This document shows positions 54,001-59,952 of a stretch of 64,000 nucleotides of DNA, piece by piece. Source of the DNA: Podarcis melisellensis (lineage: Eukaryota); assembly GCA_964234715.1 (NCBI GenBank), contig OZ174276.1, one strand, 5' to 3'. The position numbers and the translations under genes were made by a program. Within the stretch, counting starts at the first letter, position 1, and the number at the start of each line of letters is the position of its first letter. The notes below the pieces were generated by a model. The model was given only the letters and a program-made list of their open reading frames with translations. It was not told the DNA's origin and ran no database searches.

Positions 54001-57000
54001 TATCTACTAAGTTTGCTGATGAGCACATCCCAGGTAAGAGAAAAGGAGCCTACGTAAGCGAGCCATTGCTGGTCCACTTCCCCATCAGCGCTGACCTCTT
54101 GTAATAAGTGCAGAGTCTAGAGGACACCATCTAGGCTACCCACCAGGGCCTTCATGTTCTGAAAATGCCTGAAGAAGCTTGACTGCTAAATTTTGGAAGG
54201 CAGGATAATAAACTTCTTGCGCACCTTGAAGATGCTTTTGTTTGAGGGGTTGTCTCCTGCTGCAGTGTAACACTTATCTCTTTGCTACTCAAACTAGAAT
54301 ATTGGTTTGGTACAGGTGACTCTCAACATACGTGGGGGTTGCGTTCTAGGCTGTAGCTTGCAAAGCCAAACTCACGTATAGTCAAAATACATTGGGGTCA
54401 TAGGTGGGTGGGATTGCCAAAGCCTTTTCTTTCCAGGACACCTGCCCCACCTTTAATTTATTTAAAATTCGTGAAGCATGTAAAGCTGAATGTGTGTAAA
54501 TAGCAAGTTAATCTGTGTAGGAAGATGGGGCTTCCTTGATAGTCATCAGTGATAAGTCTCATGCTTAATGCGCTTGGTTAACAATGCAGTGGTCCAGCCT
54601 TCCTCAGTGGGAAAGAATTCTAAGATGGTAGTGGAAATAACTATTAGTAGACGATATGTTACTTTATTGCCTGTGAAAGTCTTTATGCTTCCTGTACTGA
54701 TAGATGGAACTCAGTGTTGTTTTGTCTCTACTAACTACAGGGAGCCCATTTACTGTGAAAATAAGTGGCGAAGGAAGGGTGAAGGAAAGCATTACACGTA
54801 CTCGGCGGGCTCCTTCTGTGGCCACGGTTGGAAGCTTGTGTGATCTTAACTTAAAAATTCCAGGTAAGTTAGTTCTACTAATACATTTACTGTTTTGGAA
54901 ACCATAAACCAATAAGTCATTGAATCTTCTGGGCATTCTTTGCAATCAGATTTAAAAATGGAATGTTATCCAAATACTTCTAGAGATCAGGGAAGGCATT
55001 CTTATTTAGATCAGGGCTTTGCATGGTAGGACTCACACCAATTTCTTCCTAGGCCCCATGAAGCAGCAGTGGCATTTAAATTTTGCTTTCTAGCACATCA
55101 CCCACTGACTCAGTTCTAATAACAAGTGACCTGGTTCACATGTAATGCTAAGCCAAACCTGGACTTAAGGTGAATGCATAGGCTATTCAAAATGATATCA
55201 TTATTTTTGCCTCTTAGACCTTCCTCCTGTTGCCTGTCTACCTGAGTCTAAGCCACAATTTGACTTAGCACATGGCTGAACCCAGATTTGTTTTATTAAC
55301 CAAGGTTTATTCCTGGTTTCACAGTTTATGGTTTGTCTAGAGGAAACAAACCATGAGCTTGAGTTTGGGCTACATGTTAAGCCAAACCATGGCTTAACTC
55401 ACTGTAGCACAGCAGTACTGGATGAAGAACAATATGCCCAAAATTTCTGTTCTGGGAATTCATTCATTCATGCTATGTGTGAAGTACGGTTGTTAGGATG
55501 ATCTCAGAAGGTTGTACTTGAGTACTGTAATGCTTGACTTCAGCCATATTTTTAGAAGGGTAGGAGCGCAGTTGCTGCTATAGAGATCTGTATCATGTGG
55601 ATCTAACTGGGGGAGACACATAAAATAACTGGATGGTTAAAGAATAAATGCTATCTTGCTAATAGAATGCACTAATACACAGAATATATTCAGCATGCCG
55701 CTTCAGTTTAATACATATTCTGACGTCTGTTTCTGTCTCTTTCTCTGCTGCTCTAATCAATCTTGGTCTTCCTGTCTTCTGTTCCTTTCTTTCCCCCTAT
55801 TGCCTTCTCATAGTTACATGGTTCCAAATGGCTATATGTCTGGAGAGATTGTCCCGTGTTTCACACCAGTTCATTCCCACTTTCCTGTGTGCTGAGCAGA
55901 AGGAAAACTTCCAGACTCAATTGAGAGAACCTTGGTGTCCTAGTTTCACAAAAAAACCAGCCAACACCAGACAACAGTGTTTCCAATCATTCCTTCTATG
56001 GGGTCTACAGATGTATTACATACCTGGCTCCTTAGGGGTAGTGGGTACGTTGTAGTACTGAGGTTGTTCTATAATTGCAATACATACTTCAATAAAATCT
56101 GCTTTAAGGCACAATGCATGGCAAGTAAGCAGCAAAAGTATTTGTTACAAAGACCTGTAACAAACCCTCAGTCAGTAATGGAGCCTGTGGCCCTCCAGAT
56201 ATTGTTGAATTCCAATTCCTATCAGTTCTCAGAATGGGTGATGTTCACTGCACTAAATCCAACTCTGTTCCCAAATAAAATTAGTTTCTTCCTTTCCTTT
56301 CCTTTCCTTTCCTTTCCTTTCCTAAGAGAACTTCAAAGAATCTTAAGCACAACCCCTCCTGGACATATTTGTCTGTAACTTGGTAGATTTGATCTGCTCT
56401 GTTGTGGGGGGAGTCTATTATGCCTGCAAATTCCATCCTCTTCTGTCAACAGGAAAAGGTCGGGTTTTTTTTTTACTTCCCAGTAGTTATTGGTGTGGGG
56501 GATGAAGTGGACTTAAGTTGGGTGATTCAATTCTTGATTCATTTGTCAAGTGCTTCAGAAAGAGGCAGACTGCTTTCTGAATTGTGCACCTGCTGTGTAC
56601 ATTGATCAAGTAAACATTCAGAAAAAAAGGGGGGAGTGGGCTCAAATTTAACTCATCCCCCACACTTGAATGCCTGTGACTCTGTATGAGTGCAGTTGAG
56701 GCTCTATCCCAATTCCATATTTTGCAAGAAAAGGGAGCTGCTTAATATGCTTAAATCTTTTGAAGTATTCTCTTTTAATTTCGTTTGATAGATTCTATAG
56801 CTTCAAAAATGGATGGTTGGGGCTCAAAGAGCAATGTATTGATTTCTCATTACCTGCTGCAAGCTCTCTTAACTCTGCTTTCTGCAGTCAATGGAGACAC
56901 CGTGACTTGCTTGTCAAGGGTGGTTGGGTGACAAAATAATTGGATTTGTGAAGATTCTTGGTTTTTGAGATGAGCTGATAAGTATGTGCTTGTCCCTAAT

Positions 57001-59952
57001 ATATATATATCTGACACTCTGCATGCACAGATGAATGCTTGGTATGCACTCACTTAATCGTCAGTTATGTTTTGCTGGTTGCAGTTCTGGGAAGTTGAGT
57101 TCCATCAGGTTCCCAGCAAATGTCTGCCAGGTAAAAGTGTTTTGGTGTATGATCTATAGACGAATGTGCATTCAAGGGCCACTTTGCATGTAATGTTTGA
57201 GGGCATTTCAAACATCTGAAAGCAGCTGACTTTGGAACTTCCAATAGATCCCAAGAACCTCAGTTGTAGAGTCAACTAAACTTGGTGACTGGGTTTCCTA
57301 TGGGGAAGGTTTCAAAACAACTGAAATACTGGGGAGCTCTGCCCTCGTGCACTGGGCAATGTTTAGATGTTTAGAAACCAAATCTACCTGCTCCCCATTA
57401 ATGGTCAGTTCCTTTTTTTTTAGAAATCGACATTGGTGACATGTCAGCTCGGGTCACTAGCCCATCTGGGAGAATGACAGATGCAGAAATAGTAGAGCAT
57501 GATAAAAACACGTACTGTGTCCGCTTTGTACCACAAGAAATGGGGGTCCATAATGTGGATGTGAAATACAGAGGACAGCATGTGCCAGGCAGTCCATTCC
57601 AGTTCACCGTTGGGCCGCTTGGTGAAGGAGGGGCCAATAAGGTCAGAGCTGGCGGTCCAGGACTTGAAAGAGCAGAGGCAGGCATCCCAGGTAAGACCTT
57701 CACTAAATTTCATCTGAATACATGGGCATGGGTCTAAGGGCCTTGCAGTGAGAAGGGACGATAGCTGTAATCTTGGAAAAGGGTGCTTACATCTTGTAAC
57801 ACTAGAACACATTTTTGGAAGCCTAGTGACACTACCTTGTGTTGCAGAGCCCCATATCACAAAGGGATTGGAGGGCCACTTGCCTGCTTCTAATTCCTGG
57901 GTTGTTGTTGTTGTCGTTAACAGCTGAGTTCAGCATCTGGACAAGGGAAGCTGGAGCTGGAGGTCTTTCCATTGCAGTAGAAGGACCAAGTAAGGCAGAA
58001 ATTGCTTTTGAAGACCATAAAGATGGATCGTGTGGTGTATCATACACTGCTCAAGAGCCTGGTATGGATATCTTAAGCATTAGCAAGTTGAAATGAAGCT
58101 AAACACCACAAAAACAATTCCTCCTTACTTAGCAAAGTTCTTATTTCTTCCAGGTAACTACGAGGTGTCCATCAAATTCAACGATGAGCATATTCCAGAA
58201 AGCCCGTACCTGGTTCCTGTGATTGCTCCTTCCGATGATGCTCGTAGGCTCACTGTTATGAGCCTTCAGGTGAGACATAAGGAAGCATCTCCCATAGCCT
58301 ACCACAAGCTGATACCATCCTTGTGCTCAAGCTCCTTAAAATTATTACTTGCTCACTAGCTACACTTCTTCAGAGGAGATCCCTTGGCAAGCATGTAGGC
58401 CTTCCAAGTTAGGAAACAGCATCTGAAAAGGGGCGACTCTTTCCTAGTGCTATTCAGCTAAGGAACAACTGTGGCCTCCATTCTCCCTGCACAGTGGCAC
58501 TAAGCAGTTCTATAAACCTTGCTGTTAATTTTCTCACAAGCTTTGTCTATGTATGACAGTGTTCAGCAATGAAGCAATACTAAGTGGGGTAAGTTGGCTT
58601 GCATGATTGCATGCTGACAAGGCAGTTAGGCTAACATGCAACATTTCTGCTTGGCGTATGCTCCCAGAATGCACATGGTTGAACAAATGAGGCTCTGGGG
58701 TGAGCACAGAGCAGTAATTCACACATGTGCAGATGTTGCAAAACCACAAGCTTGTACTTTAAATGATTCTTAAACAGCAGCCAAAGTCTGAGTGGATTCC
58801 AGACTTCTAGCGGCTTGAGTTTGTACATAGTCCTGACTTTTTCGTGGTGTGCATCTAGCAACATTTTTAAGTGACTGTCTTTAATCTAAAATAAGAAGCC
58901 TGGAAGTTTCAGATTGAGCGCCATCCAGCCCATGATGTGTAGATTTGCTGCAGCTTGAGGCAGCAGTATTGGTTAAATTGCACTGCTTTTCAGAACTATG
59001 GTTTTATAGACTGACATTTGGTGTAACTTTCTAGCCAGAGCTGAACTTAAAACAAGGAGTTACAAGGACGATAATTAGCTGCTGTGGTACTGATGTTTTT
59101 CTTGTGTTTCATTTAAAGACTCTTGACAGAATGTGTGGTGTCAGCTGACTTAAACCCTGAAGAGGGAAATAAAACTGATATTTTTTTTGGGGGGGGGAGG
59201 AGTAATCTTTTTACAAAAGATGTCTTTTGGCACTCCATAAAAAACTTCCTTGGTGTATTTTAGCTGCCTGTTTCAGTTTATTTCTCTCTTGAGGATAAAA
59301 CTGTTAAGTTGAAATTAAGGTAAGCTCTGCACTGAAAGCAAAAGCGCAGCATTCCAGCGACCCTCCCCCCCGATGGAACTTCAATTTTCCAGTGGCTGGG
59401 GGCGGGAATCACACATGCATAACACCAGGAGACTGTGTTTTTTTGTATGTGTGGTGACCGCTACTGGGGAGCAGGTGTGCATTGATATATACTTTTGGTT
59501 CCACCTTTGCTGGCATGTTAACAGAAATCTCCAAAACGTTGTATTTGTTGGCATGGGGTGAAACATGCTTTGCTTAATCAGAAAGCTCCAGGCTTAATTG
59601 TCGGTGCAATATGGAAATTTGTTTTTGGCAGCATATTAATGAGTTAGCTACACAATTAGGAAAAGGGATTTCAAGTGATTTTGGGAGTATGGCAAAGCAA
59701 ATTCAGCCCAGACAACCATAAAGATTTGGGCAGCGCAAGCTTAAAGCTAATGCATTTGATGATTATGGGGCTGGCATCCTACATTTGTAGCAAAATGATG
59801 ACCAAAATGATGACTTATAGTCAGACCAGAAAAAAGTGTGTGGGTAGACAAACTTAACCAAGCCCACACTTTGGGAATGTATTGTACTGCTGTTGAGGAA
59901 GATAATTAGTTGTTAATAATAAATAATAATAAATAAATTGATGATGATGATG

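Follow-up and report, generated by a model that had tools for sequence, protein, structure and literature searches.

The window analyzed here, 64,000 nucleotides (nt) of Podarcis melisellensis DNA (contig OZ174276.1), holds most of the filamin gene FLNB; the gene lies on the + strand, its exons spread between ~8.8 kb and 63.8 kb. One of its introns contains what we take, with a probability of roughly 80%, to be a real, expressed, and ancient cassette exon (positions 55814–56044) that preserves the reading frame and is homologous to the exon encoding the Ig20 insertion of filamin C (FLNC). According to published accounts, among them a 2020 review and a 2023 preprint, only FLNC has that "muscle-specific" insertion and neither FLNA nor FLNB does, and it has been invoked for Z-disc targeting and muscle disease (PMC7216277; bioRxiv 10.1101/2023.08.05.552086). 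Features associated with the FLNC type are expression in striated muscle, targeting to the Z-disc, and binding of myotilin or Xin. If our reading is correct, filamin C is not the only filamin with such an insertion, contrary to these accounts. A literature search, with subscription journals outside its scope, found no paper linking an FLNB exon to the FLNC insert.

Gene and Intron Context

Exon-wise comparison placed the C-terminal exons of the window at 83–95% identity to mammalian FLNB, at 64–78% to FLNC of the lizard Phrynosoma, and at 67–78% to FLNA-like proteins; because the identities are highest to mammalian FLNB, we assign the gene to FLNB. The cassette exon lies in a 2560-nt intron between two constitutive exons (Table 1). 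The first of these (54741–54863), onto which contigs splice the upstream exons, terminates in ...CDLNLKIP plus the G of a split codon. A 123-bp exon likewise occurs in human FLNB as exon 40, which is skipped in var-1 (PMC2199218). An initial annotation, made from the letters alone, had described an AG-free tract, an acceptor, a phase-1 frame, a donor, a TAG, and an AATAAA in this intron, and each was found where it had been placed. The AG dinucleotides flanking the AG-free zone are at 55705–55706 and 55812–55813. Since open runs of at least 70 codons occur several times in the intron, the open frame alone is weak evidence for an exon.

Inclusion of the Exon in RNA

Transcript evidence came from two related species, organism B (run X7) and organism C (run X12), in the form of contigs rather than reads. 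Neither run is recorded as RNA; we treat both as RNA by content, because their contigs skip three neighboring introns with GT..AG ends. In X12, a 290-nt contig spans 55812–56043 plus 28–30 nt of the upstream and downstream exons, with joints 54863/55814 and 56044/57424 and GT..AG ends at both. The corresponding X7 contig (357 nt) begins in the intron, at 55717, crosses the exon, and contains the joint 56044/57424; both runs also contain the skipping joint 54863/57424. Word depth in X12 was 18.4 for the inclusion contig, compared with 13.2 at the skipping junction and 10.7 in the constitutive contig; contig depth is unsuitable for ranking isoforms, and we read these values only as a sign that inclusion is not a trace event in X12. 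The cassette exon proposed in the initial annotation is therefore spliced as predicted in RNA of two relatives, at the acceptor in X12 and at the donor in both.

The same annotation had suggested a second outcome, in which splicing bypasses the donor, TAG 56053–56055 ends translation, and cleavage via AATAAA at 56091 yields a truncated filamin B. As the main product of a terminal or poison exon, such a protein would be comparable to human var-2 and var-3, and the idea draws on the presence of both signals and on human FLNB, where an exon of this intron gives rise to truncated heart isoforms (PMC2199218). In both runs, however, all depth in 55958–56154 is fully explained by contigs spliced from 56043/56044 to 57424, and no contig in X7 or X12 continues past 56044 toward the TAG or AATAAA, with the proviso that rare forms could escape contigs. 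Read-through thus found no support. The donor is moreover conserved to fish and the exon itself contains no stop, and we consider this alternative very improbable.

Two observations concern the 5' side of the exon. Contig 25 of X7 starts 97 nt inside the upstream intron and represents either a splicing intermediate or a transcript started in the intron. At 55828, the codon for the M of WFQM provides an in-frame ATG; P0240, a catfish protein model described below, likewise begins upstream, in the intron.

Homology with the Filamin C Insert

Four FLNC inserts, all non-human, served for comparison: those of tiger snake (P0162), Phrynosoma (P0171), ruff (P0227), and darter (P0216). FLNC inserts are nearly invariant from fish to snakes over 80 residues (87% mean column identity), and the snake, lizard, and bird fragments showed that the FLNC sequence quoted in the initial annotation was correct. 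By BLASTP, the lizard peptide aligned to the snake insert from the first residues of both (12/34 identities, E value 2e-4). A sturgeon exon, introduced in the next section, matched the snake insert at 9/12 identities (E 4e-5) and the lizard exon at 8/13, bridging lizard FLNB and FLNC. Profile comparison with hhalign paired columns 1–15 of the FLNB exons with columns 1–15 of the FLNC inserts (E 1.6e-5), and the N-terminal motif is identical to the start of the FLNC insert at 8 of 15 positions. In a six-frame search of the entire window with the FLNC insert, the top match fell at 55819–55920 (E 0.033 for the whole window); the same search with the sturgeon exon gave 55816–55854 as top match (E 0.014).

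The insert exons also resemble each other in structure. In the snake, the FLNC insert is encoded by a 243-nt exon (L008 2326–2568) with a long CT-rich tract, an AG, a phase-1 start ..AATTGGTTCCAGATGG.., and the donor GGAGG/GTGCGT, and human FLNC devotes one extra exon of 243 bp to it, with a half of domain 20 encoded on either side (PMC2192634). The lizard FLNB exon is likewise a separate, frame-preserving exon after ...NLKIP (231 vs 243 nt) with phase 1 at both ends, a CT-rich tract, a donor of the form GG/GT(G/A)CGT, and the start xWFQM....ERL(T/S)R. Position and phase, tract, GG/GTGCGT-type donor, and N-terminal motif are thus common to both exons, which supports their homology.

A real exon could in principle resemble the FLNC insert by chance: only a short stretch is similar (12/34 identities), and the peptide is otherwise unrelated. 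This explanation leaves unaccounted for a top match across the whole window that lies in the right frame at the exon start, the same intron position and phase, the similar tract and donor, the sturgeon exon as a bridge between FLNC (9/12 identities) and the lizard (8/13), and the hhalign E value of 1.6e-5. It is already largely refuted, and we give it next to no weight.

The homology has its limits. It is detectable over only the first ~15–34 residues, neither BLASTP nor hhalign having aligned anything past residue 35. Whereas the FLNC insert is kept over all 80 residues, the FLNB exon is kept over ~15 only, and both the 24-residue stretch and the RxRxxSxxS phosphosite region of the FLNC insert are absent from the lizard exon. 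Because the conserved 65-residue remainder of the FLNC insert is missing, the lizard exon is not a strict member of the FLNC insert group; it further differs in lying within FLNB and in being optional. Protein searches added no further relatives: the 76-residue peptide had no match among PDB sequences at E values up to 10, a homologue search that covers only proteins of 42–133 residues, and so says little, gave no candidate, and none of 150 filamin representatives retrieved with the next exon carried an insert, in a set whose 50% clustering merges paralogues.

The Exon in Fish FLNB Loci

Three fish loci contain a matching exon. In the catfish Tachysurus ichikawai, the protein P0240, annotated as filamin-B isoform X1, reads VTWFLLALARELLSR... 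just before the VTSPSG exon, and the sequence is encoded at L001 2891–3082 (192 nt); an open-access literature search found no paper discussing this annotation. The sturgeon exon (L007 5473–5625, 153 nt) reads VTWFQLAVAQERLT..., and that of a third fish (L009 2742–3002, 261 nt) reads VSWFLLVLSRQLLSH...; both of these exons are unannotated. The L009 exon is placed between the LSLKIP exon (end 2303) and the VTSPSG exon (~3620). As the exon preceding the intron was not found in the sturgeon or catfish contigs, L009 is the locus that proves the within-intron position in fish.

All three fish exons are open, phase 1-1, and multiples of three in length, with a CT-rich tract and the donor GGAGG/GTG(C/T)GT. 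The lizard donor, GTACGT, and the GTGCGT/GTGTGT donors found in snake FLNC and in fish FLNB are orthologous by alignment. The likeness to the lizard exon includes the VTWF start and, downstream, GAGGTTGGCAG and a GCATG, which lies 20–60 nt past the donor in 3/3 fish loci; GTACGTTGTAG and CTGAGGTTG are common to lizard and fish loci as well. The exons differ in length, and the middle and end of their peptides are unrelated across the lizard, the sturgeon, and the two teleosts. Because fish FLNB loci carry the same exon, we conclude that it predates the FLNB/FLNC split, in agreement with the initial annotation, which had placed the insert before the duplication. Its presence in FLNB from ray-finned fish to a sauropsid would date the module accordingly.

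Upstream of the sturgeon exon, on the minus strand (L007 1849–4836), lies a 995-residue open reading frame with no Pfam hit, possibly a mobile element in the intron. In a probably invertebrate filamin of 2264 residues (P0008), ~20 extra residues, VAFFARFAHYQEEIQTTSG, follow ...LSLKIP (residues ~1760–1800) and occupy the same spot as the vertebrate insert.

Selection and Loss

Over the first 14 codons, the proportion of synonymous differences (pS) was 0.46–0.84 and that of nonsynonymous differences (pN) 0.18–0.44, with pN below pS in 10/10 pairs. The Thr, Leu, and Arg of the motif are kept via different codons, which together with the pN and pS values argues that the motif is kept as protein. 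Among close relatives, the quietest part is the tract plus the first 78 nt of the exon: organism F differs at 1/151 positions over 55754–55904 and organism A at 4/229 over 55647–55875, compared with 4–5% divergence in the remaining exon sequence and the intron close by. The substitutions listed in relatives between 55892 and 56003 (10/10) comprise nine nonsynonymous and one synonymous, and the differences listed for relatives B and C include no gaps and no new stops. Selection thus appears to act on the splice sites, the phase, and the first ~15 residues, xWFQ[ML]..A.ERL[ST]R, only, with the remainder a fast-changing spacer.

The exon is not found in all FLNB genes. In two bird-like FLNB contigs, the intron is only ~580 nt long (L003 361–940, L004 2312–2890), and nhmmer profiles of the 5' and 3' exon ends gave nothing significant in these two introns or in that of seal FLNB. 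The homologous intron of a catshark FLNA-like locus is ~330 nt (L012 5190–5520), and the exon was not seen there. In Weddell seal FLNB, two weak matches at L002 2391–2413 and 2633–2657 are colinear, on the same strand, and ~240 nt apart, with neither significant (E 3.4 and 4.9); the sequences concerned are CTTGGTGCCAGCT..CTCTGG/GTGAGA and GGCA/GTACGTGG followed by GCATGCGG. They could be a mammalian relic, perhaps related to human exon 40B/C. A first blastn/tblastx match of the exon in seal was ruled out as the tail of a carnivore short interspersed element.

These data bear on a further explanation, namely that 55814–56044 is a decaying relic of the ancestral insert exon, still spliced and tolerated because it keeps the frame, yet without protein function. 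It would account for the 3' two thirds changing at the intron rate (nine nonsynonymous to one synonymous), for a composition unlike that of the hydrophilic FLNC insert, for the loss from the short bird-like introns, and for the undetectability in seal; open frames of such length are also common in the intron, and the human exon in the same intron is truncating (PMC2199218). Across sturgeon, teleosts, and a sauropsid, however, a relic would not be expected to conserve its acceptor context, donor, phase, and motif, nor to remain open and a multiple of three in four lineages at once (153, 192, 261, and 231 nt). With pN below pS in the motif and an X12 inclusion contig comparable in depth to the constitutive one, we regard the relic as unlikely and favor a functional cassette exon.

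Several points nevertheless weigh against a functional, FLNC-related exon. Past approximately residue 35, the peptide is without FLNC similarity, without the FLNC basic/acidic stretch, and without the phosphosite motif; its tail in the lizard is rich in Cys, Trp, and Phe, ends hydrophobically, and evolves as fast as the intron. The two bird-like contigs lack the exon, and in the seal intron it is undetectable. The assignment of the sturgeon locus to FLNB, made from three conserved exons only, is weak. RNA evidence consists of contigs from relatives B and C, so that expression is shown in relatives, and the X7 contig with the donor joint, whose start at 55717 is intronic, could be a splicing intermediate. 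Finally, regulation is predicted from motifs, and the effect on Ig20–21 discussed below is likewise a prediction.

Proposed Mechanism and Function

Inclusion of the exon adds 77 residues directly after ...NLKIP, between strand A of Ig20 and the remainder of that domain, which is the exact site of the FLNC insert. In the structure of FLNA Ig19–21, the first strand of Ig20 covers Ig21 and blocks its ligand groove (PMC1948075). The exon before the intron encodes this first strand. Skipping of that exon, as in var-1, strengthens integrin binding (PMC2199218). With the cassette included, the blocking strand would be tethered to the body of Ig20 by a longer link, and the WFQ...ERL core would sit beside Ig20. 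The core may act at the Ig20 fold, adjacent to it, or on a partner, and could thereby tune the Ig20–21 mechanosensor or targeting, as is thought for the FLNC insert. The resemblance to FLNA/FLNB var-1 is one of alternative splicing at the Ig19-20-21 mechanosensor that alters the relation of Ig20 strand A to Ig21; the difference is that var-1 removes strand A, whereas the cassette exon keeps it and adds 77 residues behind it.

The insertion region of human FLNC, 81–82 residues long, covers residues 2162–2243, and its p.Trp2164Cys variant has been linked to cardiomyopathy, with a 7-degree rise in the melting temperature of Ig20 (bioRxiv 10.1101/2023.08.05.552086). By numbering, the invariant Trp of the motif would correspond to Trp2164, and the 15-residue core that selection appears to have kept would then include the Trp mutated in this variant. 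For a snake FLNC fragment comprising part of Ig19, the insert, and Ig20–21, AlphaFold2 (19-row alignment) assigned the insert a predicted local distance difference test score of 24–39, which permits no structural reading. The natural variants, 51–87 residues long with unrelated tails, could be used to probe how an insert affects the Ig20–21 force sensor.

Inclusion of the exon is probably tissue-regulated, judging from the pyrimidine tract with TCTT motifs, the (T)GCATG downstream of the donor, present in fish as well, and the fact that human FLNB uses an exon of this intron specifically in heart.

Relation to Human Exon 40B/C

The heart-specific exon 40B/C of human FLNB is 147 bp long, has an internal donor at 70 bp, and truncates filamin B after 24 (or 28) new residues in var-2 and var-3 (PMC2199218). 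This exon was absent from the initial annotation. A full-text search for later papers using the names exon 40B/C or var-2/var-3 found none. Compared by its published description, it occupies the same intron as the lizard exon, after the same 123-nt exon, with the intron ~2.5 kb in both; it differs in being 147 bp and truncating, while the lizard exon is 231 nt, open, and spliced onward. More tentatively, the Ig20 insertion might be an ancestral, alternatively spliced filamin module. FLNB of fish and squamates would then be switchable to an FLNC-like state, affecting Ig20–21 mechanosensing or WFQ...ERL targeting, and human exon 40B/C would be a decayed orthologue of the cassette exon, a possible origin for an otherwise unexplained heart-specific truncating exon.

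Feature Coordinates and Neighboring Repeats

Table 1. Features of the FLNB intron and its flanking exons (window positions)
Feature	Position	Strand	Remarks
Constitutive FLNB exon	54741–54863	+	123 nt; end of Ig19 and strand A of Ig20
24-nt unit ATGCTAAGCCAAACCTGGACTTAA	55145–55397		Three copies, 71–83% alike, spaced 100 and 129 nt
GCATG	55693–55697	+	~116 nt upstream of acceptor; possible RBFOX-type site (motif scan)
AG-free zone	55707–55811	+	105 nt, 78% pyrimidine, several TCTT motifs
Acceptor AG	55812–55813	+	Joint 54863/55814 with GT..AG ends, run X12
Alternative cassette exon	55814–56044	+	231 nt, phase 1-1, 77 codons, open
Conserved N-terminal motif	55814–55857	+	Common to fish FLNB exons and start of FLNC insert
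Fast-changing 3' two thirds	55892–56044	+	No similarity to FLNC or fish exons
Donor GTACGT	56045–56050	+	TGG/GTACGT; joint 56044/57424 in X7 and X12
In-frame TAG (56053–56055) and AATAAA (56091–56096)	56053–56096	+	Sequence present
CTGAGGTTG	56058–56066	+	Counterpart in downstream intron of sturgeon and catfish: GAGGTTGGCAG
TGCATG	56115–56120	+	70 nt downstream of donor; possible RBFOX-type enhancer
Next constitutive exon	57424–57690	+	Rest of Ig20 and start of Ig21

Several repeats and one length difference were seen elsewhere in the intron. The copies of ATGCTAAGCCAAACCTGGACTTAA, upstream of the cassette exon, are probably a piece of a repeated element. Downstream, 56180–56225 and 56280–56331 hold a short dispersed repeat followed by a (TTCCT)n microsatellite; at the dispersed repeat, hundreds of contigs have loose ends on both sides in 4/4 runs, with bin depths of 87–2061. 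One contig of organism C lacks 87 nt at 57079–57167, with TG..TG at the ends of the gap; an interspecific deletion, not splicing, is the most likely cause.

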